From Vitrella brassicaformis CCMP3155 (taxonomy: Eukaryota > Protista > Chromerida): DNA of 51,897 nucleotides. The stretch is from assembly GCA_001179505.1 (NCBI GenBank), contig CDMY01000558.1, positions 1 through 51,897 of the forward strand, written 5' to 3'. How positions within the stretch are numbered: the first letter of the stretch is position 1; every line of letters begins with the position of its first letter. The position numbers were made by a program, and so were the translations under genes. Below are positions 10,561-43,176 of the stretch, in pieces. Under the pieces are notes generated by a model. The model was given only the letters and a program-made list of their open reading frames with translations, ran no database searches and was not told where the DNA came from.

Positions 10561-13500
10561 ATGAACCAACCCTCTTCCCAGCCTCCGCAGCCGTCGAATG
10601 GCGTCCGCTCATGGGACTCTCAGGGTGTGGGAGGCGTCCCACCGCTGCCCTTCCCAGGCTGGGTGACCCATCCTGGGCAGTATGGGCCGTTCGGCAGGGA
10701 CGGTCCGATGCCGCCGCCACACTCGTTCCCCCCGCAGATGCCCATGAACGGGGGCATGGGCCACCCTGGCGCCATGCGGCCGCCCTTCAGCCGCACGGGC
10801 AGCGAGAACGGGCTGGGAGGACCGCGGGCACAGTCGCCCCCCGCTGTCAACATGAGGTGAGGTGTCTGCCTGGGAAGCTGGTTGGTTCCTCATGTGCACA
10901 CGGTGGTCTGTCTGTCTGTATGTGTCTGTCTGTCTGTGTGCATCAGGCCGTGGACTCCTGCAGAGGACGAGCGGCTGCACGAGTTGGTTCAGCAGTACAG
11001 CGGCGGCCACTGGAACAGCGTGGCTGCCTACTTCGAGGGGCGCATGGCGGCAGAGTGCATGAACAGGTGGCACAAACACCTCAAGCTGGTCGACCGTAGA
11101 ACCGACCCCAAGGTAGTCAGCTGACAAGACAGCACACAAAAAGGGACCACATGTCCATTCGGTATCCGTGTGTGTCGTGTGTGTGTGACTTGGCTTTCAA
11201 CAGGGTGCTGCTCCCCGGCCGACGGATGCTCCTGAGCGGCCGAGTGCCAGCGCCGCGGCAGCACCACTGGAGCTGGATGCGCAGCACAGCGCTGGTTTGA
11301 TGGGCCCTTGCGGGATGATGTATGGGCAGCGATACGGCCCGGGCAGCTCTGACGCAAACTTCAAGTGAGGATGGGACGAGAGAGAGATGGGGATATATGC
11401 CAGCGGACACACCACTAACTAACTATGTCGTTCGTGTGCCTTGTTGGTCATTGCAGTGGGTACTGGAGCAATGGGATGTCTGTGGCTCCACCCGCAACCA
11501 ACGGCCCCTACCTCGCCCAAGGGTACGCACGCATCACACACAACACACAACACACAACAACACATCACCCTCTCCCCCACATGACATGAGGCGCCCCCCT
11601 CTCCCTGTCGGTTTGCACAGGCCCCCGGGCTGGATCGGCCAGGGAGGCCCCTTCCCCCCTCCCCCTTCCTCAGTGTTCCCACCCCGAGGCCCACCACACC
11701 CATCGCGGCCAGCAGATCACAATGGCGGCGGCGGCGGCGAGGCGGTGTCGCCCACCAGTGCGAGCAACACCAACAAGCGGGACGACAGCAGCTTGACGCC
11801 GAGTCCGCACCCCTCGCGGCCACTGGGGCGGGAGGGTGGGCCGTTCGCTTATGGGCTGTCGTTCGATCTGCCTGGGCAGAGCAATGCCGAGGTCAGGCCC
11901 GAGGCGGCCGGTGAGGGGGGTGGTGGGTCGAATGGCGAGTCCAAGACGCGTCGCGGCAAGAAGAGGAGAAAGGAGGAGGAAGCACAGGAGGGCGAGACGG
12001 ACCAGCAGCGAGGCGTGCCCGCCCCACTGCCGCTGCCAACGTTCCCCGGCTTCTTGGAGCACTCGCCCTCCTCTCTGCTGACCCTCATGGACTCCACCAC
12101 CTGCGGCAACGCACCCACCATGCCCCTCGACTACTCGAGCATCTCTCTCCCCGCCCCATCCACCAAGAGCCTCTTCACCCTACCCAATCCGGCCATCCTC
12201 AAGCCACTGGACGAGGAGCAGCCCGACCCGCTCGCAGCCACGGCCACAGCAGCATCGGTTAAGAGGAAGGGCCACCAGCCAAAGGCCAAGGCGAAGGGCG
12301 GTGCGGCGGCAAAGCGCAAGGGGCGACGAAAGAGGGCGAGCAAGAAGGAGGAGAGGGAGGACGAGGAGGTCGACATGGATGAGCTGGCGGCGCAGGAGGA
12401 CTCGGACGACGAGCCTCTCGCTGCTCCCACTAGGAGAGGGAGGGGCAAGGGCAAGGGGCGAGGCCGCAAGAGACCGTCGCGGCAGAAGGCCTCTGAGTCG
12501 CCACCCGAGTGCGAGCAGGAGGCGGCTGAGACCCCCGTGGCCGACCCTTCACAGGAGGACGTCATCCGCATCGGGCAGGAGCTCAGGAGGCTCAGCGAGC
12601 AGCTGTTGGCATGCCGGGGAGTTTCTGCTCTCTCGGACGAGCAGCGGCAGATGCTCAACTTCCACCTCACCCACACCCACGCTGCCGACGGTCAGAAGCA
12701 TGACAGCGGCGACGGGCAGCCCGTGCAGAAGCGGAGGAAGAGCGCCGGTCTCGAGTGCCACCCTGGCCTCTACATGGGCGAGCCCAACGCAGCGCCTCCC
12801 GCATCTACATCACCTTGGCGTGGCCTGGTGGCAAGCCAGCAGGATGCGGACTCATCTCTGCCAAAGGCCAGCCCTGCTGCTGACCACCTCGGGGGTGCTG
12901 GCGACGGCAGCGGCCACGGGGGCGAGGAGGAGGAGGAGGAGGAGGGCATGGACGGTATGGAGGGAAACGAAGAGGGAGCCGTGGCCAATGACGATGCGGA
13001 GTGGGTGAAATGGATCCATCCCAGTGCCGCTGCTGCCCCCCCATCCAATAACCCCTCCTCTCGCCCCTCCTCCGCCATGGCCGTGCGGCTGGCCGTCCGC
13101 GGCGGCCCCTGGCAGCCCTTCTTTGACCCCACACACATGGAAGAGGAGGAGGAAGAGGAGCGCGATAACCCACAACGGCTGTTCCTCGACTTCAACGACG
13201 AGCGACTGCTGCAGCCCAGTGCCGGCGACGGCTTCGTGAGGGAGGACGACCCCATGGACATCGGGCAGGTCGCACTGCCGCCAAAGGTCCCGTCATTCAG
13301 CGGACTGCAGGTCCACCGCCCTGCTTCCTCGTTCGTCGGTCGGCCGTCGCCCTCGTCCTCCTTCATCGGCAACCGGAGCGTCAGCATGAGCAGCGCCAAT
13401 GTAGCGCCGGACAACATGGGTAGGCCGCGGCCGTCCAACTCGCCCGAGCCCGAACCGCCTGTGGTGCCGTCGCCGCCAAGTGAGGTGCCGGAAGGGCTGC

Positions 13501-16466
13501 TTGGCCCAGACGACGGCAGCGATCGGGGTGGCGCACGACGTGCAGACCCTGGAGCTGATGGTCGGGCAGCAGGCAAGCAGGAGGGCGAGAGGGGCAGGGA
13601 GACGGCGGTTTCGCGGCCCCCCGCTCCCCACGCGTCAAGCATGGACCCTCAGGCGTCCCTTTGTCAGCTGTTGGAGTACCAGCAGCTGGACCGCGCGCGG
13701 CTGATGCAGTACCAGAGTCTGCCGTCGATGATGCCCATGCGGATGGGGTCGGCCATCTACAGCATGCACGGCAGCGACATGCATGCTGGCGTCCCACAAC
13801 TGCACCACCGCTCATTCACCGCCCCCGAGCTCCCCTCTGAGCCGCCGGTGGCCAGCCAGACCACCCCCCCTGATTCGGGCCAGGTGCAGCTGCAGAGCCT
13901 GTTGCAGCAGCGGAGCGAGCTGGAGGAGCGCATCACACAGCAGAGGCAGCAGAATCTCACCTACCCTCCATCATCACCCTTGCCCTTCTCATACCCCGCC
14001 ACAACGAGCCAGTCCGACCGGCCGGCGACTGATGCGGACGCGGTCATCCCGCGGCTCTCTGAGGCACTGAGGTCTGTGCAGTGGCAGATAGCCAATCTTC
14101 GAGCCAGCCTGGGCAACCAGCCGCCGAACCATGGGAGCGGTAGTGGTGTTGCTGCCGGCCCTCAGCCGTCGGAGAACCACACCTCTCCACGCTCGGGCAT
14201 CCCGGGTGCCCCGCCTTCTAGCCCTAGTGATGTGATGGCAAGGGGACCACAACAACATCCGACACAGCCAGCAGGTGGCCTGTCGCTTAGCCCGTCGGTG
14301 CGGCCCCCACCCCAGCTGAATCTCGCCGGTTCTGGAGGCTACCCGCCACCGTTTCAGTACGGAGGCCGCGGCAACCAGTTCTCGCCGTATCTGCCGCCAT
14401 CGGGTGTCCCGCATACCCCTCCCATGGGCGCGTCACAGCCGCCGCATCATCCATGGAACGGCCACCAGTTCAACAATCCTCCATGCCAGCCCCCTTGGCC
14501 GATGCAGCCGCCACAACCACCACCCGTCATGATGGGCTCCCCAGCCCTCAGCCCGTCCGCTGCAGCTGCGGCATCCGAACAAGCAGCGGCGGACAACGGG
14601 CTTTTGTCGCCACGCGTATCGGTGAGAGGGGGCAGTCGGCCGCCGTCAACCGATGGGAGACAACAAGACAGCGGCAGCGGCAGTGGCAGCGGCAGCGGCG
14701 AGGGGCGTGGAGTGAAGAGGGATGTGTCCCAGCCGATCAAGGACGAGAAGCAAGCAGCGGGCGATGGCGATGGCGAGAAGGGTGGCAAAGGTGGTGTGCG
14801 GCAGCAGGGCAAGGAGGGGAAGATGTCGCGTGCGGCGCTGTTTGACGGGCCGTTTCCCATCAAGTCCCAGTTTCTGTCGATGTCGCCCGGCGAGCTGGAG
14901 ATACAGGAGCGGCTCACCACTATCAAAGAGGTCCGTAGCGCAACACACACAGAGGAGACAGGCCAGGCCGTGGTTAAATTGATTTGTCGTGTGTGTATAC
15001 AGCTGTGGCAAGGCAAGACGACCTTCACGTCGACCACCAAGAACAAGCGAAGCGAGCCACCCAAAGACAAGCCAGCCCCTCCCACTCACTCATCAGCACC
15101 AGTACCAGCAGCGGCATCGACTGACGCTGCTAGCTCTACCGATCCCCCCCAGTCAGCGGACCCGCCGCCTCTGACGCGGCCCCTGTCAGCGGACAAGGCG
15201 TCATCCCCCTCTGCAGCCCCCCGCTCGCCCCTCCTGGCCTGCCCGGGCAGCGCACCGGACATCATGGTGTCGCGGTCCAGCAGCAATCCTCCGCTCATGC
15301 CGAGTGTCCCGGAGGACGCCGAGGTCAAGGGGGAAGACCAGGAGGATCTCCCGGTGCCTCATTCACCACCACCGCCGGTCGGCGCCAGTGGACCGATGCG
15401 GCCGCTGACGGCCCCCCCTCCCTTGGTGTGGGGCACAGGGCGATTGGCTACCGTTGGCAGGCCGCCGGCGCTCGCCATGCCCAAGTGGCAGCAAGACAAG
15501 CTACAGCAGCAACAGCAGCAGCAGCAACAGCCACAGCCGAGAGCAGAGGAGGCACCGATCGGCGATGACAGCGGCAAAGGCAGCTCCACGAGCGCCCCGG
15601 AGGCAGAGAGAGGTCCAAACGGCCTTCCCAAGGCGCCGACAGAGATCCTGGCGGCATCGCTGACCGAGTTCGACCCCTACAAGCATCTCAATCTGCCGCA
15701 GGAGCGTATGCCGAAGCCTGACCTCGTGCCGGGGAAAGAGGTGATTGTCAGCTCAGCGCCGCCGACGGCGCGGCCCCCCTTCGGCTCTTCCATGCCTTTT
15801 CAAGGCCAGTTTACCATGCCGCTGGCAGCGGCAGGGTCGCCCCCTCTCGTGAACGCTGCGCTGGGGCTCGCGAGACAGCTGGAGGCCAAGGGGCTGGGCG
15901 GCCAACAGGGGGGCGGTGGCAATCGACGTCGTGAGGAGAATCCAATTGCGCCGTCTCAGCCATCATCAGTCGGGCCGCTGACCTTCTCGCCGTCCAACCC
16001 GGCTGCCACATCCCGCTTCCCTGTCTACAACTATGCCTATAGACCCCCCCTGACGCCGCCCTTTGCCTACCGATTCGGCCCCGTGCCGCCTTTGTCCTTT
16101 ATGTACAACGTCGGCATCCCCCCGCCCAGATACACACACATGCACAGCAGCAACACGGCCGTCGAGACTCAGAGCCAGGCCAGTTCGGAGGGCCGTGCTG
16201 TGTCGGGTCGTGCGGCGAGCGAGGGTCGTCCTGCCCGTCAAGAGGCAAAGGTTGCGGGGGATGTGCCGCCCAAGGGCGATTCGCTGATGTCTGGGTCGGG
16301 TAGGGGTAAGGTGCTGTGGTTTGGCGACCCGACGCCGACGCCGGCGTTGAAGCAGCAGCTGGCTTTGCTGCGTGAGGCGCACCAGGAGAAGATGCGGGGC
16401 GGGGAGGACAAGGATAGGGAAGAGGGCGAGGGCAAGCCAGAGGGAGATGACAGCATGCAGGGATGA
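10561..16466 (+). CDS. Large Myb/SANT-domain protein with a long disordered Pro/Ser/Gln/Glu-rich C-terminus
   Basis: Exon 2 encodes PWTPAEDERLHELVQQYSGGHWNSVAAYFEGRMAAECMNRWHKHL (W-x19-W-x18-W Myb spacing). Reading continues in phase into the frame that is open from about 11620 to TGA 16466. Probable in-frame intron near 14931-15002. Confidence 0.8.
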
Positions 16467-20214: not shown

Positions 20215-22227
20215 ATGGGTCAGTGTATGTGTATCCACCCCGAGGCGGAGAAGGAGCGTCAGGATGAGGTGGAGCCCTTCCCACAAGTCACTGTCAAATC
20301 CACACCACCAGGTATATGCGGTGCCTACCTTAGTTAGTCAGACCAACACAGAAGGATTCAGGGGGCAGAGGGAGCAGACAGACAGGGGGACGGACTGCTG
20401 TTAAGATAGCCAGCCAGGCATTAAGGGTGGCAGTCTGTCTGGATGTTTGTGCTCAACGTCCCGTTTGGTGTGTGTCTGGCTGCCTGTGGTTGGTCTGTGC
20501 TTTGCTGGTTGAATCGGTCAGGTCCCGGAGGTGACGACATTCTGGAGGAGAGGCCTCGGGTGGTGCTCGAGAACGGCGTGACCTATACAGGACAGTGGAA
20601 GGTAACGTACACAAAACACAATCACACGCAGGCAGGGAAATAGAGAGTACTAAATGACGCTCATCTGTTCTTGTGTGTCCCTCCCTACTTGTGTGTGTGT
20701 GTAGGGCAACAAGCGTCACGGCTACGGCGTGCAGGAGTGGCCCGATGGCGCCAAATTCGAGGGACAGTGGGTCGACGGACTCGCCAACGGTAACCAAACC
20801 AAACCAATACACCACACACATGTATACACACCGTTGGTGTGTGTGTGTGCAGGTCAGGGGAAGTTCACTCACAGTGACGGCGATGTGTACGAGGGCGAGT
20901 GGAAGAACGACAAGGCCAACGGACACGGAACCTACTACCACGCTGACGGATCAAAGTACTTACACCACACACTCACGGAGAAAGATACAGAGATACAGGA
21001 GGGGCGCCTGCAACTGTACGTTCATTGCTCTGTTGGTGTGTGGTGTGTTGTGTTGTGTTGTCCACCATACCTGCCACCCACCCCCAGGTATGTCGGTCAG
21101 TGGAAGGACGACCAGAAGCACGGGCAGGCCACCGAGGTCTGGGCGGACGGATCCAAGTTCGAGGGAGAATACAGGTACCTAACACAACACGCCACAGGTG
21201 TAGTTGACACATAGTATGTGTCGTATGTGTGTGTGCCAACGAGTAGGATGGGCAAGAAGCACGGCAATGGTCAGTTCTGGTGGCCCGAGGGCTCATCCTA
21301 CGAGGGAGAGTTCGCCGACAACGAAATCCACGGCATCGGCACCTATCGCTGGAGTGACGGACGCGTCTACAAGGGAGAGGTCAGAAACAACACCGCCCCC
21401 CCCCCCCCCCNNNNNNNNNNNNNNNNNNNNNNNNNNNNNNNNNNNNNNNNNNNNNNNNNNNNNNNNNNNNNNNNNNNNNNNNNNNNNNNNNNNNNNNNNN
21501 NNNNNNNNNNNNNNNNNNNNNNNNNNNNNNNNNNNNNNNNNNNNNNNNNNNNNNNNNNNNNNNNNNNNNNNNNNNNNNNNNNNNNNNNNNNNNNNNNNNN
21601 NNNNNNNNNNNNNNNNNNNNNNNNNNNNNNNNNNNNNNNNNNNNNNNNNNNNNNNNNNNNNNNNNNNNNNNNNNNNNNNNNNNNNNNNNNNNNNNNNNNN
21701 NNNNNNNNNNCCCCTCACACACACACACGCCCCTCTCCCTCGTCATTGTTACTTTTACTGTCTGCAATCCCATCACTGCCTTGTGTGTTGACATCCATCC
21801 ATCCATCAGTGGAAGCACAATCGCATGTGCGGCGAGGGTCGGTTCGCGTGGAAGGACGGCCGCAGCTACGTGGGCCAGTACGTCAACGACAAGAAGGAGG
21901 GCGTCGGCACATTCACATGGCCGGACGGACGCCAGTACAAGGGCGACTGGAAGGACGGCAAGCAGCACGGCATCGGAGAATTCAAAACAGCAAAGGGCGA
22001 ACTCAGGAGAGGTCAGTCAGTGAATGAAGGGCAAAAGCAGGACGGACAGACGCATGACACGATACCACACACACGTGTATGTGTATGTGTATGTGTGTGG
22101 CTGGTTGGTTGGTCGATGGATGGATGTATGTGCAGGGGAGTGGAAGGACGGCGTGAGGATAAAGTGGATATCGGAGGCCTACCGACAGGGCGACGAGCCG
22201 CCCGCCAACGCCGACAAGATCGGATGA
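20215..22227 (+). CDS. MORN-repeat protein with a predicted N-terminal acylation signal (MGQCMC)
   Basis: Repeated YxGxWxxGxxxGxG units ([60 protein letters not shown]) across GT-AG exons. The gap at 21411-21710 falls in an intron. Confidence 0.9.
21411..21710. other. Assembly gap (300 N)
   Basis: Run of N following a poly-C tract. Confidence 1.
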
Positions 22228-24490: not shown

Positions 24491-24790
24491 NNNNNNNNNN
24501 NNNNNNNNNNNNNNNNNNNNNNNNNNNNNNNNNNNNNNNNNNNNNNNNNNNNNNNNNNNNNNNNNNNNNNNNNNNNNNNNNNNNNNNNNNNNNNNNNNNN
24601 NNNNNNNNNNNNNNNNNNNNNNNNNNNNNNNNNNNNNNNNNNNNNNNNNNNNNNNNNNNNNNNNNNNNNNNNNNNNNNNNNNNNNNNNNNNNNNNNNNNN
24701 NNNNNNNNNNNNNNNNNNNNNNNNNNNNNNNNNNNNNNNNNNNNNNNNNNNNNNNNNNNNNNNNNNNNNNNNNNNNNNNNNNNNNNNNNN
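24491..24790. other. Assembly gap (300 N)
   Basis: Run of N. Confidence 1.
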
Positions 24791-28891: not shown

Positions 28892-30214
28892 TCAGAGCTT
28901 CGCCCTAACTTGCGACATGACCTTCTCGCTCGTCACGAGAGCACTGCTCATGGCACCCTCGACAGACGCGGCCACCATGAAGTCCCCCGCCACGTACACA
29001 CCGATCTTCTCATCCCCCACACACCCCCGCCCCCTCAGTCCGTCAGGCACACCCACGGGGAAGCAGCTGCCCCACCTGTGGGCCTGCACGGCGGCAGGCG
29101 AATCCATATCCATCTTGCTCGCCGCCTCCTTGGCCACCGTCTGCAGGACCATCTTGAGGTGGTCTGCCATCGTCTTGGCCAGCCTGTCCAGGGCGTCGGG
29201 ATCGCTCGACGCCGACACGCTAATGTGCTCCTCTGCGAATGCGGGAGTGGAGTGGGCGACGAACGACACGTGAGAGGGAGAGGGGGAGTGGCCTGCTGAG
29301 GGGGTGGGAAGGGGCATCTGCACCACCTTGGAAAGCATGCCGTTCTCGATGAGCAAACAATCAAAAGGCAGAGAGGGCGGGGCGTCGCTGACAGGGTAGG
29401 TGACCATGAGGCTGAAGATGGGGTCGCTCTTGACCTCGCCCATCATGGCGGCTACCCTCTGCACAGCATCCGACACCTGTGCGGCAGCCAGCCTGTCGCC
29501 GGCCACAGTCAGGGGCGGGGGCAGGCCGAACGTCTTCTGGAACCGGGGGTGGCCGTTGGTGACGCTCGTGATGATCAGGTAGTCATAGCCGGCATATTCC
29601 TTGGCCTGCTTGTCCACCAGCCGCCACTGCTGGGTGGTCTTGTCGAAGCAGTACTCGACTATCATCGTCTGCTCCCTCTTGGTGATGTTGTCGCCCTCAA
29701 GCAGCGCCGAACACAGGCTGGCCATGTGCGGCACCCCTCTGTAGATCTTGCAGGTCTCAGCGTCGCCGGACGACCCGTGGCTGGCCCGCGTCGTGTCGGC
29801 CTGCCGCACCCCCTTGGTGGCCCAGTCTATGCTCATGACCTTGCCCTTGTACTCCTCGATGCACTGTTTGCCGGCCAGCGACTCGATGAAGGCCGTCACA
29901 GCAGGGTCACACACATGGAAGCAGGGGGCGCCGTGGTTGTACCACACCCCAGGGAGCTGCCGAGTGAAGCGAGTGGATGCCCGGCCGCCAGGCCCACGGC
30001 CCATCTCTGCAGCAGGAGCCGCACACAAGACAAGACAGCCAACAGACAGACAAAGCGATGGATGAATGATCATCGAACTGGTTGGTTTATCGACAGACGG
30101 ACCGAAAACGTCGATAGCGATGGGCAGGCCTGAGCGGGAGAGCTGGTGGGCGATGGTGCTGCCCGTGACTCCTGCACCTATGACGGCCACACGTTGGTGC
30201 TTGAAAGCCGCCAT
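28892..30214 (-). CDS. Renalase-like FAD-dependent oxidoreductase
   Basis: RVAVIGAGVTG (GxGxxG), EMGRGPGGRASTR, NHGAPCF, AHRWG and AGDFMVAASVEGAMSSAL. One in-frame 96-nt intron near 30010-30105. The frame is open upstream to about 30301, so the start could be earlier. Confidence 0.85.
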   Translation of the reverse strand: MAAFKHQRVAVIGAGVTGSTIAHQLSRSGLPIAIDVFGPSVDKPTSSMIIHPSLCLSVGCLVLCAAPAAEMGRGPGGRASTRFTRQLPGVWYNHGAPCFHVCDPAVTAFIESLAGKQCIEEYKGKVMSIDWATKGVRQADTTRASHGSSGDAETCKIYRGVPHMASLCSALLEGDNITKREQTMIVEYCFDKTTQQWRLVDKQAKEYAGYDYLIITSVTNGHPRFQKTFGLPPPLTVAGDRLAAAQVSDAVQRVAAMMGEVKSDPIFSLMVTYPVSDAPPSLPFDCLLIENGMLSKVVQMPLPTPSAGHSPSPSHVSFVAHSTPAFAEEHISVSASSDPDALDRLAKTMADHLKMVLQTVAKEAASKMDMDSPAAVQAHRWGSCFPVGVPDGLRGRGCVGDEKIGVYVAGDFMVAASVEGAMSSALVTSEKVMSQVRAKL

Positions 30215-31066
30215 CCTGACTGCCGCGGCAGTGCACAGGAAAGCAGCGAACAATCTGAGCCTCAAAACGATGGCAGTGACCTCACAGATTGAGATCTGCA
30301 CAACTTGGAAACGGAAGAGAGGTTTGCCATGCGTGGTCTCCGCATTGGCGCTCGGCCGCTGACGTTCCGACGGCCATCACGAGTCGAGGTGTGCGCGCGT
30401 CTACAGAAGGGATCATCCTCCTGTCCGCCCCGATCGGCACCCCGGCCTTCATCGAGCGCATCGTGAACGAGGTCGTCGCCAAGTATCAGCGCCTCCTCGA
30501 CGCCGTCGTGGCCTTTGCTGTCGACGATTGGGACCATGCAGTGCAAGGGGCGAACCTGCTCCTTCGCTACTGTGAGTCCCCTCGCTTCCTCTACTGGTGC
30601 CGCCTCCTCGCCCCCTCCCCGCCGCTCTTGGCGGCCGCCCGTGCACATGATGCTGCGAAGGTCACCGCATTCACCAGCATCCACCGCACGGGCGCCCTGT
30701 CTACTTCGGCACACCGGCAGGTGCAGCTTCCCATCCGGTTGGGGGGCTTTGGGCTGGTGTCGTCTGCGCGTGTCGCACCGGGTGCTTATTTGGGGTCCGT
30801 GGCCGTCACCGTGGGGGATGTGTGGGATCGTTTCCATGGGCAACCCTGAATGCCCGAGTCAGAAGCCTCTCTTCTCCAGCTGGAATGGCTCGTCTCGGCG
30901 GCATCCGCCCGCATCGATTTCTCCGCATCCCTCCCCTCTGTCGCTATCCCCCCCATCGCGCACCTCATCGCGCGCCCGCAGGCCCGCCTGCAGCAGAAGA
31001 TCTCTGCCGCCCTTGCGCAGAAGGACTTCGACACCCTCTTCGAGTCTTTCCCAGCTGGCAGCCGTG

Positions 31067-31366
31067 NNNNNNNNNNNNNNNNNNNNNNNNNNNNNNNNNN
31101 NNNNNNNNNNNNNNNNNNNNNNNNNNNNNNNNNNNNNNNNNNNNNNNNNNNNNNNNNNNNNNNNNNNNNNNNNNNNNNNNNNNNNNNNNNNNNNNNNNNN
31201 NNNNNNNNNNNNNNNNNNNNNNNNNNNNNNNNNNNNNNNNNNNNNNNNNNNNNNNNNNNNNNNNNNNNNNNNNNNNNNNNNNNNNNNNNNNNNNNNNNNN
31301 NNNNNNNNNNNNNNNNNNNNNNNNNNNNNNNNNNNNNNNNNNNNNNNNNNNNNNNNNNNNNNNNNN
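31067..31366. other. Assembly gap (300 N) within the retroelement block
   Basis: Run of N. Confidence 1.
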
Positions 31367-33185: not shown

Positions 33186-33485
33186 NNNNNNNNNNNNNNN
33201 NNNNNNNNNNNNNNNNNNNNNNNNNNNNNNNNNNNNNNNNNNNNNNNNNNNNNNNNNNNNNNNNNNNNNNNNNNNNNNNNNNNNNNNNNNNNNNNNNNNN
33301 NNNNNNNNNNNNNNNNNNNNNNNNNNNNNNNNNNNNNNNNNNNNNNNNNNNNNNNNNNNNNNNNNNNNNNNNNNNNNNNNNNNNNNNNNNNNNNNNNNNN
33401 NNNNNNNNNNNNNNNNNNNNNNNNNNNNNNNNNNNNNNNNNNNNNNNNNNNNNNNNNNNNNNNNNNNNNNNNNNNNNNNNNNNNN
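33186..33485. other. Assembly gap (300 N) within the retroelement block
   Basis: Run of N. Confidence 1.
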
Positions 33486-34944: not shown

Positions 34945-35244
34945 NNNNNNNNNNNNNNNNNNNNNNNNNNNNNNNNNNNNNNNNNNNNNNNNNNNNNNNN
35001 NNNNNNNNNNNNNNNNNNNNNNNNNNNNNNNNNNNNNNNNNNNNNNNNNNNNNNNNNNNNNNNNNNNNNNNNNNNNNNNNNNNNNNNNNNNNNNNNNNNN
35101 NNNNNNNNNNNNNNNNNNNNNNNNNNNNNNNNNNNNNNNNNNNNNNNNNNNNNNNNNNNNNNNNNNNNNNNNNNNNNNNNNNNNNNNNNNNNNNNNNNNN
35201 NNNNNNNNNNNNNNNNNNNNNNNNNNNNNNNNNNNNNNNNNNNN
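34945..35244. other. Assembly gap (300 N) within the retroelement block
   Basis: Run of N. Confidence 1.
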
Positions 35245-36694: not shown

Positions 36695-36705
36695 AAGAGA
36701 GATTT
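36695..36705. repeat. Candidate target-site duplication: AAGAGAGATTT here versus AAGAGAGGTTT at 30315-30325
   Basis: 10/11 identity. The left copy abuts the first base of retroelement homology (the T at 30325 is shared). Confidence 0.45.
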
Positions 36706-36829
36706 CCTACGCGAGCTTAAAGGCTCAGGCAGTGAGAGGGGATGAACGGATCTGGGAAGATGCAGAGGTTATTTGAAGAGCAGCAGATCTCCTGAGAGTC
36801 CCCTTTGCTGAACGAGGCCCTGCGATGCG

Positions 36830-38070
36830 ATGATTCGTCAGCCCGCCTCCCGCCTGTCATCCCTCCCGCGCCCTCCCCGCCCCTGCGATAGGCCGCCGTC
36901 GCGCTCCTTCGCTCACCACCGCAGCTCGCCAAAGATCATGAAGATGCCCGGCCACACCAACAGCTCCACGCGAAAGGAATACAACTATGCCGGCGATGAG
37001 AGGGCCAACGTGGTGAAGCGGCTGGACCCGGGCGACGTCTTGTATGGGATGACAGTGCGGCACATCGACTGGTACGGCAACGGCGTGGTGCGGCTGGCCG
37101 TGCGGCAGTTCCGCATGGACCATGACTTCGCCTTTCCCCGTGCGCTGCCCGGCGAGAAGCTGGCGCTGCGGGTGGACGATGCGCGCAAGAGGCACTGGAA
37201 GGACTACGACATTTCCCTCATCGGCACCACCCAGCGGAGTGAGGACGAGGTCGAGATACCCTGCCCGCACTTCCTCCAGGTACGTCAGTCAGTCATGTGG
37301 GCTCTTCATCGTCCTGTTTGGTGCGGTACATCCATCGCTCTGTGTGTGTGTATATGTGTGTGTGTGTGCAGAACTGCGGCGGGTGTGCGTTCCAGCACTA
37401 CAGATACGACAAGCAGATCGAGCAGAAGACCACCCTCCTCAAGGAGCTTTTCCGCGACTACAACATGCCCTACATTGAGGACGTCCCCACAGGCAAGAGG
37501 AAGAAGGGCCTCTACGTCGAGGGAGAGACCAACCAGGCCCTCCTCATCGACGCGCCACCGGCGCATTCACAGCAGCACATCACGGGCGGCGAGTGGGCCG
37601 CACTGCCCGAGGGCGATCGGCCGCTGCAGATCGGTGCTCCGTCAAGTGGCGAGAACGCTCTGTTGGAGATGGGGTCAGGGGGAGGAGAGGTGACGGAGGT
37701 GGGCGGTGGTGCAGTGTACAGTGGCAAGGTGGAGAGGCGGCCTCTGTCAGGCGGCAGGCGTCGTGACGTGACGCCATGCCTCCTGCACACCTTCATTCGG
37801 TCACCGAAGCCATTCAGGTCGGTACCACCTCACATGACCATGACCATTAAGGCGCCTGTCCACCTACCTCTCCTGTTTGCTGTGTGATTGTGATTGGATG
37901 GATGTGCAGGTTTCGGAACAAGCTTGATTTCGCGTTTCAACACCGCAATGTGCCGATGATAGGCCTCTTCCATCGGCAGGCGCCCTCCGTGCTGCCCATC
38001 GACGAGTGCCTCCTGGCGCCCTCTGCAAGTAGGGCGGGAAGAGGGCCGCGGGGGATGGCCTGTTGTCGTG

Positions 38071-38103
<33 letters not shown>

Positions 38104-40784
38104 ATATATGTGTGTGGTTGTCAGTTCAGGAGACGTATGAGGTGTGCAAGGAGGCGTTTCGGGAGCTCTTGGCGAATGACGGCATGACCATCTACTCACT
38201 CCGCACGGGCCTGGGCATCCTCAAGAACCTCACCCTCAGATACGCTAGTGAGCCACCACACCCACGCCCTCGCGAGCGCATCTTCTCTTCTCCTGTCATC
38301 TATCCTATTAGCCAATCTGGACGGCAAGACAGAGATCCTGGTCAATGTGGTGACGGGCAGCCCTGTGGATGCGGAGCGGCTGCTGCCTCTGGTGGACCTC
38401 CTGAGCGCCAAGGTGCCGCAGGTGGTGGGCGTGGTGGCCAATGTGTCGCGGACCAGGTGGGGCGAGGTGCACACCGAGGGCGTGCTGGGGCAGGGGCAGT
38501 ACGGCCGCGACGAGCAGCTCCTGTATGGCCGCAACTACATCCTGCAGCGGGTCATGGGCCAACAGGTCTTCCGCATCACCGGTAGGCGGACAGGTGCACT
38601 GCACCGATGGCTGTGCTGTGTGGGCGGGGGGATGGATCTGTGTGTGTTCCTCTGTGTAGGTTCTTCGTTCTTCCACACGAACATGTTGCTGGTGGACCGG
38701 CTGTGTGAGGTGGTGCTTGAGATGGCCGACCCCTCGCCGGATGACGTCGTGTGGGATGCTTACTGCGGCTCGGGCATGCTCGGCATCCTCTTCACCAAAC
38801 GATGCAGACACGTGAGCCAGTCCACACACAGCGCACGAGTCGACGCGTGGACGCTCCTGTGTGTGTGTCTGTAGGTGGTGGGTGTGGATTGGGCGCCGCA
38901 GAACATGAAGGAGTGCCGCGAGAACATGAAGCTCAACAACGTCCCGCCGAATAAGATGCGACTCGTACTCGCAAACCTCAGCAACAGGTCGGCCAGCCAG
39001 CCACCTAGGCCCACACCATCGGCATCGCATTCATTGCACCAGTTCTCCGTTCCCCGTGTGTGTGTGTGTGCTGTGTGTTAAGGTTCACATTGCGTCAGCT
39101 GGCGCTGCACGTCCGTCGGTGGGCGATCGAGCAGGTGGACCCCGATGTCATCGAGTCCATCAACGAGCGAGTCAGGAACGCATGGCTGGCCGGCACCAAG
39201 ACGTCACGCGTCATCGAACGAAACGAAGTGAGTCAAGCAAGACACACACAGCCACCCTCGACACCCGCTGCACACGTATGTGATGCTTTGAACGCAGATG
39301 GGCCCTTCCCCCTTCCTCAACCTGCCCCCGCCCCAGCCCCAACCCGCTGACACCGACACACCATCGAGTGACACTGACGCCGACCTCCCCCCCTCCCCGC
39401 CTCCTCGGTTAGAGTGGGACACTCCGAGCGACCCACAGTACCACGTGGAGATGCAGCTCAAGGCCCTCAAGCTGCTGGCCAAAGAGGAGGAGGACGAGGT
39501 CATGCGGGCGCAGAGGGAGGCCGCCATGCGGGTGCTCAACATCAGCGACCCACTCGTGGGGCCAGACCTCACCGATTTCGACGCACACACCACCGAGGGG
39601 CTGAGGAAGGGTGAGGAGAAAGGGAGAATGGAATGGAATGGAAGGAAAAGGAGGTCCTGACACGGACTCGCGCCTTGTATGTGTGTTGTGTTGTGCTTGG
39701 CTTGTCAGACAAGAAGCCCAAGTTGACCCCCAATGTGTACCTGGCCGACAGCGAGGGAGCCAGCAGGTACCTCGCCGAGGCTGACGTGGCCATCAGTGAG
39801 CGCAAAGAGGAAGACGAGCTCGTCCCTGCAACAGGTCGCCCAGCCACCCCACCAGGCCACGGACTAACCCACCCTGCACGAGACACCTGCACCTTTTCAT
39901 TTTCTTCCTTGGCCGGCCATGAATGGCTGCAGGCACGAGCGACGACCGTCTGCTGGAGGCGCCCGATGACGAGTCAGCGGATGACTCGGTGGAGGCGGTG
40001 GCGAGCGAAGCGGACGATGAGCTGTTTGAGGATGAGAGTGAGGGTGACATTGAGGAGGAGGGAGACGACAGCAGCGAGGTCACCATGGGCCGCCGGGAGG
40101 AGGAGGATGCGGTGGGGCAGCCACGAAGGGGAGGCCACTACACCATCCCGCCTCCAGACATCCTCGTACTCGACCCTCCAAAGGACGGATGCCACAAGGT
40201 GACGCGCGCACACACACGGACACGCACAGACGCGGGCATTGCATACATACGTCAGGGCACGTGTGTGTGTGTTGTGAACACAGGTATTTAGGCGATGGCT
40301 CCGCTCTCTTGTGGTCAAGAAGGTGGTGTACGTGTCCAACAGCCCCCGTCGGGCCATCCGTGACGCGCAGCACTTGATCCTCATGGGCTATCAGATCGAG
40401 CGTGTGCAGCCCATCGACATCTACCCCCACACGACGCACTTCCAAATCGTCATGCTACTCACCCTGCGAGACCCACCTGCACCGGTGCACCAGCCCGGCC
40501 AGGGGCCCATCAGGCAGGCCGGAAGCAGCCAAGAGACAGCAGAAGAGAGGCTGACGGACGGGAGAGGGGAAGGAGCGGAGGGGAGGCTGGAGATTGCCGC
40601 GTCGCTGGGGCTGCCGATAGCCAATCCGCTGACCACGCAGTCGATTCCGGTCAAGAGGGGGGAGAATGTGCGGCCGCCGACCACTGCTCGCATGTACAAG
40701 GGCATCAGGAGGAAGTACAGGCGGAAGGGCGGCCTCACTCTGGCCAGCGATGAGGCACCCAGGACACGGCACAAGGTCTCTTAG
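36830..40784 (+). CDS. TrmA/RlmD (RumA)-family RNA m5U methyltransferase-like protein, predicted catalytically inactive, with an Arg/Ser/Pro-rich organellar-type leader
   Basis: TRAM-like N-domain, CPHFLQNCGGCAFQH, FRNKLDFAF, IDECLL, SSFFHTN, VVWDAYCGSG, VVGVD, ILVLDPPKDG, VVYVSNSP and PIDIYPHTTHFQ in family order. About 12 introns. Confidence 0.85.
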
Positions 40785-41569
40785 ACTGGCTGGGGGTAGC
40801 TGTGTGGATGTGTGTGGTGTGTCGATGGATGCTCTGTGGATTTCGGTCGTTGAGGCTGTGTCATCGCTTTATGTGTGGATGGACCAGACGAGAAACTTCA
40901 TGTCCTATGTGCGCATCAGTGACTCGCACTTAAGGAGGGGTCATTGTCTTGCCTGCAAACACTCGTCATCGACACAGATATCCAGACAGATAGACAGCGA
41001 GAGGGATAGATAGATTACACACAAAAATACCCACCCAGTGGGCATTCGTTCGTCCATCCTTACGCACACGACACGGCCTCACTCACTGATCGAACTCCTG
41101 TATGTCACAATCACCATCAGCCCACAAGAAGGAAGCCGCAGAGAAGGCAGAGAGGAGATGGGGAGACTAGGGAAGCGGTCGAGAATAGGCAGGTAGGGTA
41201 CAAGGGAAAAAGAGGGCGGTGGAGTCGCCCCCACCCTCTCTCACTCTCACTGGCTCTCGCTCGCTCGCATCACGAACGTCAATCGGCAGCCAGCCAGCCA
41301 GCCAGCCAGCCAGACGGCGAAGTACAAAACTGGGCAGATGCCCTCCCCCCTCCGCCTCCTCTCTCCTCTCGTGTGTCCGTCTGTCGGTCCTGCTGACTGC
41401 GTTGCGTGAAGGCGCCAAGAACCACCCTGCCCCACCCTCCCCCTCTGAATCTTGTTTGCCATCCTGTATGAGGAGGCCCGGCCTGACTGACTCACTGACT
41501 GACGACGTTGACACTGTCCCCCCCTCTCTCCCTCCCTCCCTCTCTCCCCCTCCCTGCTGCGTCACTCTC

Positions 41570-42936
41570 TCAGTCCCTCGGCTGCCGGAGCTCCTGGTTC
41601 ATCTCGAGTTCTCTCAGTTTGTAGCCGATGGCGATCTGCCACAGGCACAGCTGGGCCAGGCTGGTGCCCGTCTGCTGCAGGATCGTCTCGGCCCGTGCGT
41701 CGCGAGACCGAGCCCCTCCCATCCCCAACAGGACAGACTTGGTCAGCTGGCCATTCAAAACACACACACACACAAACATGAGGCGACTTGGCGCATCCCT
41801 GCGACACGTGTGTGTGAGTGTTTGCATGTCATCACCTGTTTGATGGCTTCTACAAGGTCGTCTGGGAGGTTTGTGACCTCTGCGGAGCGCCGCTTGAGAT
41901 ACATCTTCATGTAGGCCATCAGCTCGGCCGCCTCGCTGCCCTTGCCGTACTCACCCGATCGCCTCATCACCACCCGACCCTCCTCGTCGGCCTTGCTCAG
42001 CTCCCGCTGCCGATCTATCCGCCGCGACAGCCGGGACAGACGCTGCTTGAGGGCATCGCGCTCGGCCTCCAGCTCCCTCACGTACTCGGACACATCTGCC
42101 TCGACCGTCCGCCCGTCGGAAGTGGTGAGACTGATGGTCCCAGTGGCCTCGCTGGCTGGCTCCTTGCCTCCCCCCTTCTTCTTGCCCGAAGATGAAGGCC
42201 CTTTCTTTTTCTGCGCTTTGGCCTTTGGCCTGCCCTCGGCGACGTCGGCCTCCTCCATTGCTCCAGACAGGCGATAACGGTACTCGGCATGCTTGAGGAT
42301 GTAGCCGGCCATGCACACCTGCCAGATGAGGGCCGCCAGCCTCTCGCCCGTCGTCAAGACTGTCGTCTCGAGTGAGAACTTTGGGATGGTCCCCAGAAAG
42401 CCACGGACAGTCGAGATGGCGACCTCCTTGGCCTGCGGCGACGCCCCCGCCATGAAGCTCTGCGTGAGATCCCGAGGGCTCCACTGAGCGATCTGCCGAA
42501 AGAACTCATTTTCAGAATCCTCGAGGGAAAGAGGGAGGTCAAACTCGCCAGCCGCCTTGCCCGCGAAAGACCCTCCGAACACCGTGTTGTTGTCGCCTCC
42601 GTGTGCACCAGCCAGGGGCAGGTCCCACCGCACTGGCTGAGATTGCGACATGAGCTCGTCCAGCAGGTTGCCCTCCTCCTTCTCGTCGTCCTCAAGCCCC
42701 TCATCTGAGAACTTAAAGCTGGCGTGAGGCGGCTGCCGTGTCGGCCGCCGCCGCCTGTCAGCCTGAGAGCCAGCTGAAGACGATGAGAACGCTGAGAGCG
42801 ATGGGAGGGGAGGGGAAAGGAAGGATGAGGGCGAGGATGCTGCCCTTGACCATCTCCTCCGCGGCAGGGCGCTCCTCGCAGATGAGCAGATCACAAGAGA
42901 TAGAGAGCCGAGGACGAAGCAGATGAGGAGGCGCAT
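41570..42936 (-). CDS. DUF760-family protein with a bipartite plastid-type leader
   Basis: MRLLICFVLGSLSLVICSSA followed by an R/S-rich stretch. TVRGFLGTIP..TTGERLAALIWQVCMAGYILKHAEYRYRL, plus a second repeat LAQLCLWQIAIGYKLRELE. One intron. Confidence 0.8.
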
Positions 42937-43176
42937 CTGGCGTGTGAGTGAGCAGCGGCGATTCAAGATGCTATGTTCATCCCGCGGAAAGGCTGACAAA
43001 GGTGGCCGGGTGGCAGCGGACGGAGTGCCTCTTCGCTGTTGCGTCATCATCATCAAACCGCCCTTCTTCCAGTTTCACGTAATGTCCTAGGCTCTGCGAG
43101 CTTAGCGGGGAAAGAAAGAAGGTTTGCGTGTCAGCGACCCCATCGCGGCGCTTACTCATCCCACTTGCAGGAAGAG

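Follow-up and report, generated by a model that had tools for sequence, protein, structure and literature searches.

A Transcribed RlmD-Type Gene in Vitrella brassicaformis Encodes a Candidate Pseudo-Methyltransferase with Relatives across Myzozoa

Introduction

RlmD of Escherichia coli (RumA; structures 1UWV and 2BH2) is the 23S ribosomal RNA (rRNA) 5-methyluridine 1939 (m5U1939) methyltransferase, and the chemistry of its family, COG2265, requires a cysteine thiolate (PMC7226160). A 12-exon, 1007-codon gene of the chromerid alga Vitrella brassicaformis CCMP3155, delimited by spliced transcript contigs at positions 36830-40784 on the positive strand of contig CDMY01000558.1, encodes a protein that resembles this enzyme in the four-cysteine [4Fe-4S] motif (C-x6-C-x2-C and a distant Cys), the FFxxN motif, S-adenosylmethionine (SAM) motifs I, II and IV, exons that match the NCBIfam rumA model collinearly and, by way of an orthologue's structural model, the three-domain fold. 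All coordinates refer to the window, the whole stretch of 51,897 nucleotides analysed. The Vitrella protein departs from E. coli RlmD in carrying Asn in place of Cys389, Gln in place of Glu424 and His in place of the FFQ Gln, in two large insertions (~110 and ~270 amino acids (aa)), a leader and a basic C-terminal tail of ~105 aa, and in being encoded by a eukaryotic, nuclear gene with 11 introns.

Methyltransferases retained for non-catalytic roles in mitoribosome biogenesis are known. Diplonemid TFB1M lacks catalytic residues and the activity of human MRM2 is dispensable, both proteins functioning in mitoribosome biogenesis (PMC10325924), and a paper on METTL15 likewise reports a catalysis-independent role in its title (PMC11197891). 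The likeness to the Vitrella protein would lie in an rRNA methyltransferase being kept for a binding or chaperone role once its chemistry is lost or dispensable, in lineages whose mitochondrial rRNA is reduced or fragmented; however, TFB1M, MRM2 and METTL15 belong to other families, have no Fe-S cluster and have an experimental association with ribosome assembly, whereas for the Vitrella protein we only infer one. The novelty of the present case lies in an Fe-S protein of the RlmD type, in its spread across Myzozoa and in a presumably active relative inside the same clade. We read the Vitrella locus, with a probability of roughly 0.55, as a real, expressed nuclear gene for a protein of 1007 aa descended from a bacterial-type RlmD/RumA 23S rRNA m5U methyltransferase whose catalytic residues have been replaced and which would serve as a non-catalytic, RNA-binding accessory factor.

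Results and Discussion

Family Membership and Catalytic Residues

On its motifs the Vitrella gene product is assigned to the RlmD/RumA type (COG2265), and it appears to keep the three domains of RlmD, namely TRAM-like, central (with the four [4Fe-4S] cysteines) and class I SAM-binding. Database queries were single exons or the stop-free stretch spanning exon 5, the following intron and exon 6, while the joined model was used for the frame check, local BLAST, MAFFT alignment against fetched proteins and the tree. Single-exon Pfam scans gave nothing useful; exons 2, 6 and 12 matched NCBIfam rumA/RlmD collinearly at model positions 63-92, 266-316 and 387-431, each alone below the whole-protein cut-off, and the solved structures matched by exons in phmmer searches were RumA and RlmCD. 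The tree also places the protein inside the RlmD/RumA family.

Four cysteines, Cys145 (TGC, 37262-37264), Cys152 (37375), Cys155 (37384) and Cys332 (38007-38009), align with the cluster cysteines of the family, the CGGC of exon 2 falling on RumA Cys87 and Cys90 by phmmer. SAM motifs I (WDAYCGSG, with DAYCGSG at residues 502-508), II (VGVDW) and IV (DPPK, with DPP at 833-835) are all intact. The uracil-binding Gln is replaced by His475 (CAC, 38674-38676), with FFHTN aligned to FYQVN of RlmCD and followed by motif I. Exon 12, aligned with RumA residues 382-429 in 1UWV, sets Asn860 (AAC, 40338-40340) on Cys389, the nucleophile, and Gln895 (CAA, 40443-40445) on Glu424, the general base. In an alignment of 40 sequences all three residues are invariant in the 20 of 20 canonical members, which read FFQxN or variants with Gln, S-C-(N/E/H/D) and H-x-E. 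A first-pass annotation made from the letters of this DNA alone had described a protein with four cluster cysteines and SAM motifs kept and three catalytic residues replaced; each residue that it named was recovered at the stated position in the window sequence, and the alignments to RumA, RlmCD and the 40-sequence set agree with its description. Because Cys, Glu and Gln are all replaced, the Vitrella protein is predicted to be unable to make m5U by the family mechanism. These residue states support the reading of a pseudo-methyltransferase, a protein that probably binds RNA without modifying it.

Gene Structure and Transcription

Transcript contigs of four public runs were mapped on positions 36700-40900. 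Introns are absent from two contigs of ~3.6 kb (runs X5 and X6, from separate studies) and from several X1 contigs, whereas the X7 contigs follow the genome collinearly with introns retained; therefore, both a DNA form and a spliced RNA form exist. All 11 introns are GT..AG and are skipped with 0 mismatches in the X5 and X6 contigs, with no indel reported, and the X1 contigs back five exon joints, among them the last (40198 to 40284), which was seen in three runs. The 12 joined exons form a single open frame of 1007 codons, as checked with a local script on window coordinates, and the window's five assembly gaps all lie outside the gene. The intact, cleanly spliced gene of the first-pass annotation is thus borne out.

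For the 52-kb window, a second copy and an alternative last exon were both ruled out, as neither a motif of the YVSC type nor another match to the family occurs anywhere in it; the transcripts likewise gave no different last exon with YVSC. RNA editing restoring the Cys was ruled out for the catalytic codons in the mapped runs because the transcripts carry no differing letters.

All 12 exons lie on the positive strand. Exon 1 (36830..37279) encodes residues 1-150, comprising the leader (~1-60), the TRAM-like domain (~61-140) and Cys145, and exon 2 (37372..37817; residues 151-299) encodes the CGGC and then a Gly-rich insertion of ~110 aa that is not present in relatives. The FRNKLDF motif and Cys332, the fourth Fe-S cysteine, are encoded by exon 3 (37910..38028), and the central domain continues through exons 4 (38125..38247) and 5 (38312..38581). 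FFHTN, with His475, and motif I DAYCGSG are found in exon 6 (38660..38811), followed in exon 7 (38875..38987) by motif II (VGVDW, Asp525) and the motif III region. The acidic, Pro-rich insertion begins in exon 8 (39083..39227), in which no Pfam domain was found, runs through exons 9 (39298..39610) and 10 (39709..39834) and ends in exon 11 (39933..40198), which also encodes motif IV, DPPKDGC (Asp833, 40172-40174; Cys839, 40190-40192). Exon 12 (40284..40784) encodes YVSNSP, HFQ, the basic tail of ~105 aa and the stop codon. An Arg/Ser-rich leader and an acidic, Pro-rich insertion before DPP had both been proposed, and both stand: residues 1-60 contain 15% each of Arg, Ser and also Pro, with a net charge of +8, and the insertion has a net charge of -36, its length being ~270 aa (558-826) and not the ~250 aa first estimated. 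Neither this insertion nor the C-terminal tail gave a Pfam domain.

The 5′ untranslated region spans 36728..36829 on the positive strand, with transcript contigs starting at 36728 and 36747, and holds an upstream open reading frame of 17 codons (MNGSGKMQRLFEEQQIS) at 36742-36795, in a reading frame other than the main one. Microsatellites of the (TG)n/(TA)n type lie in introns 1 and 3 (37327-37373 and 38061-38121) and were skipped as repeats in read mapping. The X1, X5 and X6 contigs show loose ends at 40804, which may mark a second transcript adjoining the gene on its 3′ side.

Relatives and Residue States

The exon 5-6 piece, run by HMMER against the full library, matched 64 proteins, with no self hit and with best hits that lack the family motifs; further members were added by word searches seeded with those best hits. 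A further profile search returned only dinoflagellates and bacteria. In an IQ-TREE analysis (LG+C20) of 36 proteins and 458 columns, which excluded the partial sequences of Neospora and P0001 as well as P0071 and P0073 as fused or duplicate, 16 myzozoan proteins form one strongly supported clade (100/99) that, among these sequences, is confined to myzozoans. It comprises three lineages, namely Eleutheroschizon, Vitrella with the coccidia (81/76), and P0033 with the dinoflagellates (87/89), which meet at a fork that the tree does not order. The placement of the Vitrella protein beside the coccidian ones agrees with its chromerid origin.

In the 40-sequence alignment, every full-length member retains the glycines of motif I and all four cysteines, while the catalytic residues vary by lineage. 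Against the Gln to His, Cys to Asn and Glu to Gln changes and the DPPK motif IV of the single Vitrella protein, the coccidian orthologues (Toxoplasma, Hammondia, Neospora, Besnoitia and Cystoisospora), which share the loss of all three residues and an insertion before motif IV, replace Gln with Pro or Leu, Cys with Arg and Glu with Met; they have also lost the motif IV Asp (QPPR) and have a weakened motif I (SGSG or ASSG). The dinoflagellate members (n = 12, including Polykrikos, Gymnodinium, Polarella, Effrenium, Cladocopium and Breviolum) have replaced Gln with Arg or Pro and Cys with Gly, Ser, Ala, Asp, Met, Val or Thr. They differ from Vitrella in mostly keeping the general base as Glu or Asp, in DPGR at motif IV and G/S-x-G at motif VI, and in shorter insertions before motif IV, which are acidic as well. 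All three residues are lost in P0033, a 909-aa protein of an unidentified transcriptome. The check proposed in the first-pass annotation, whether the Vitrella substitutions are conserved among alveolate orthologues, gave a mixed outcome: the loss recurs across the clade, but the exact replacements differ by lineage and the Eleutheroschizon protein is intact.

This protein, P0066, is the top match to the Vitrella protein (357 bits), passes Pfam PF05958 at 69.5 bits and shares with Vitrella the motif II Asp, DPP-x-DG and KVFRRW(I/L)RS before motif VI, but, unlike the Vitrella protein, it has the Gln (FFQTH), the Cys (VYVSCNP) and the Glu (HIECV) in place, and it is presumably active. Its taxon was assigned from the accession prefix GHVT01 (transcript GHVT01014404), which is that of the apicomplexan Eleutheroschizon duboscqi (PMC10304595).

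Two sets of relatives carry additional domains. P0033 (L001:129-2858; Logan SRR25679400 and two sister runs), a distant member of the clade, has a DnaJ domain, a J domain with an HPD motif, between motifs III and IV, occupying the same insertion site, and its motif IV Asp is lost too. The Symbiodiniaceae models P0070, P0071 and P0073 (Cladocopium), of 1105-1305 aa, also contain protein-kinase Pfam domains, which reflect a genuine fusion or else two adjacent genes that the gene caller ran together.

History of the Catalytic Loss

The ancestor of the clade was active, because the clade has an intact member and all outgroups are intact. A grouping of Eleutheroschizon with the coccidia was not rejected in an approximately unbiased (AU) test (p = 0.14). 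If the genes are orthologous and follow the species tree, which groups Eleutheroschizon with the coccidia, then Vitrella, the coccidia and the dinoflagellates would have lost the residues independently; taken at face value, the gene tree also permits just one loss, the Eleutheroschizon gene then being the sole survivor of an old, active paralogue. Independent erosion of the catalytic residues, possibly in several losses, is favoured, though not proven, because the replacement residues differ by lineage, because the dinoflagellates keep Glu, and because the motifs around the lost residues are nearly canonical in Vitrella.

Selection and Fold

The protein annotated in Toxoplasma as "TrmA family RNA methyltransferase" (TGME49_247740) was compared with that of Hammondia; P0126 of Toxoplasma is 87% identical to the Hammondia protein, and HHA_247740 is taken by us to be the counterpart of TGME49_247740, as the two species share gene numbering. 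Coding codons of both species were recovered from the genomic loci, and the ratio of nonsynonymous to synonymous change (dN/dS) was estimated by the Nei-Gojobori method with bootstrap 95% ranges. For this coccidian pair, dN/dS is 0.20 (0.13-0.31) over all folded parts and 0.04 (0-0.18) in the C-terminal methyltransferase half that contains the dead motifs, as compared with 0.27 (0.08-0.79) in the insertion and 1.3 (0.71-2.57) in the N-terminal leader. The inactive protein is therefore maintained by purifying selection, at least in coccidia. The coordinated loss in an intact gene that had been proposed is upheld as something other than simple decay, since a conserved clade of myzozoans shares the loss and purifying selection acts on the orthologue of coccidia.

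When superposed on bacterial RlmD models of full length, the ESM Atlas model of the Hammondia orthologue gave TM scores of 0.90-0.91 (normalised by target) over ~450 residues, and on this modelled evidence the three-domain architecture is predicted to survive in the clade. Exon 1 of Vitrella had no Pfam hit and gave chance hits only in the PDB search; it is 51% identical to residues 173-262 of the Hammondia orthologue, and from residue 177 onwards the Atlas model of that orthologue can be superposed on RlmD models belonging to TRAM-containing clusters.

Localisation of the Toxoplasma Orthologue

TGME49_247740 was detected in mitochondrial-matrix labelling samples only, with 0 unique peptides in controls as compared with 2 in mitoAPEX (p 0.089) and 4 in mitoBirA* (p 0.0028), below the authors' cut-off (PMC6156079 supplement). 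In Vitrella, the most hydrophobic 19-residue stretch lies mid-protein and not at the N-terminus; because of this and the net charge of +8 in the leader, a mitochondrial presequence would fit better than a complex-plastid signal.

Several observations on the Toxoplasma orthologue weigh against the proposed accessory role. Its phenotype score of 0.31 indicates that it is dispensable in tachyzoite culture (PMC11652630 supplement), its enrichment in mitoribosome pull-downs with uL4m and other baits (log2 fold change 2.0-2.65) was not significant where true components reach 7-8 (PMC11652630), the mitoribosomal proteins listed do not include it (PMC11652630 supplement), and it has no entry in the hyperLOPIT supplement, the files of which may be incomplete. 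A second mitoribosome structure paper also contains no entry for it. The look at apicomplexan mitoribosome proteomes suggested in the first-pass annotation thus showed the orthologue present in pull-downs but below significance, and the Toxoplasma protein is not a stable mitoribosome component. The phenotype score, the pull-downs and the mitoribosomal list count against an essential assembly role, and the role in assembling fragmented rRNA put forward in the first-pass annotation is somewhat weakened; a low-abundance, mitochondrial, non-essential factor is probable, rather than a core assembly component. Our literature search found no paper on the myzozoan clade or on TGME49_247740/TGGT1_247740.

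Alternative Explanations

It is conceivable, though in our judgement very unlikely, that the Vitrella protein is still an active methyltransferase that uses another nucleophile, such as Cys839, or non-covalent chemistry such as RNA N- or O-methylation. The fully intact SAM motifs I, II and IV are in keeping with activity, and a Cys directly follows the motif IV Gly in Vitrella and in 5/5 coccidia, at a position occupied by Leu, Met or Thr in Eleutheroschizon and in the dinoflagellates; this Cys may be a coincidence or a shared derived trait. However, the Cys839 position is Cys in 5/116 canonical enzymes that already hold the true nucleophile, and otherwise Ala, Leu, Met or Ile, so the residue is best regarded as ordinary variation and was judged unlikely as a substitute nucleophile. 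An active enzyme would also have to work with the uracil-binding Gln and the general base gone, in a clade where the coccidia have lost the motif IV Asp and the dinoflagellates have an entirely remodelled motif VI. N-methyltransferases have the motif IV form D/N-PP-Y/F, from which the Vitrella DPPK differs. Equally improbable in our estimate is that the Vitrella gene was recently inactivated and is drifting towards loss, transcribed and spliced but functionless. The selection estimates come from the coccidian pair and not from the Vitrella lineage, the sequences flanking the lost residues (VYVS-N-SP and PHTTHFQ) are close enough to canonical to be compatible with recent change, and the Toxoplasma orthologue is dispensable, all of which would accommodate decay; yet the 1007-codon frame is open over 12 exons with 11 introns precisely removed, the four cluster cysteines and SAM motifs are retained, and the inactive state is kept in coccidia (dN/dS 0.04-0.23 in folded parts) and in 12 dinoflagellate sequences.

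A non-catalytic RNA-binding protein of the plastid or cytosol and not of the mitochondrion, acting for example on plastid 23S rRNA, the natural type of RlmD substrate, is unlikely but deserves slightly more weight. Plants, in which a plastid role is expected for such proteins, account for most of the canonical RlmD-like clusters of eukaryotes, and Vitrella has a plastid and the coccidia an apicoplast. Import into a complex plastid needs a signal peptide, however, and the hydrophobicity scan showed no strongly hydrophobic N-terminal segment in the Vitrella protein; the clade includes Polykrikos, which is heterotrophic, and the confinement of the Toxoplasma orthologue to matrix-labelling samples speaks against both plastid and cytosol.

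Other Features of the Window

Downstream of the gene, on the negative strand at 41758-43056, is a neighbouring open reading frame with a DUF760 domain (PF05542, E 1e-14). One open frame of 1714 aa without a Pfam match extends over 11322-16466 on the positive strand, in a region of 64-67% G+C, and an open reading frame at 28895-30301 on the negative strand matches NAD(P)-binding Rossmann and FAD-dependent oxidoreductase. The five assembly gaps, each of 300 N, are located at 21411-21710, 24491-24790, 31067-31366, 33186-33485 and 34945-35244, and account for the low-GC dips in composition profiles, which are not real sequence.

Proposed Role and Implications

The accessory-factor reading would begin with an active ancestral myzozoan enzyme whose catalytic residues were then lost in Vitrella, the coccidia and the dinoflagellates, while the fold, the cluster cysteines and the glycines of SAM motif I would have been retained under purifying selection. 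In Vitrella, the Cys that would attack C6 of uracil became Asn, the Glu that would remove the C5 proton became Gln, and the Gln that would hold the uracil became His. The remaining protein would be a non-catalytic RNA binder, probably also binding SAM and an Fe-S cluster, which could dock, most likely in mitochondria, on the organellar rRNA that its ancestor targeted or on a remnant of that rRNA, and may act as an accessory, non-essential RNA chaperone or as an assembly or quality-control factor. More tentatively, and with considerable doubt, inactivation may have occurred independently at least three times in Myzozoa with the [4Fe-4S] site and the SAM pocket kept each time, leaving a scaffold with a conserved job that does not depend on catalysis. 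If that were true, the scaffold could be a redox- or SAM-sensing RNA chaperone for fragmented mitochondrial rRNAs, and the Eleutheroschizon protein would represent the ancestral active form.

To our knowledge, no agreement has been reached on what the [4Fe-4S] cluster of RumA-type enzymes does, and a clade that dropped the methylation chemistry while selection preserved its cluster cysteines and SAM site would be a natural experiment parting the role of the cluster from catalysis. The presumably active Eleutheroschizon protein and the inactive orthologues of the same clade provide a ready-made comparison. The uncharacterised TGME49_247740 gains a testable identity, and the organelles of myzozoans, whose rRNAs are extremely fragmented, gain a candidate member among their poorly known RNA-handling factors.

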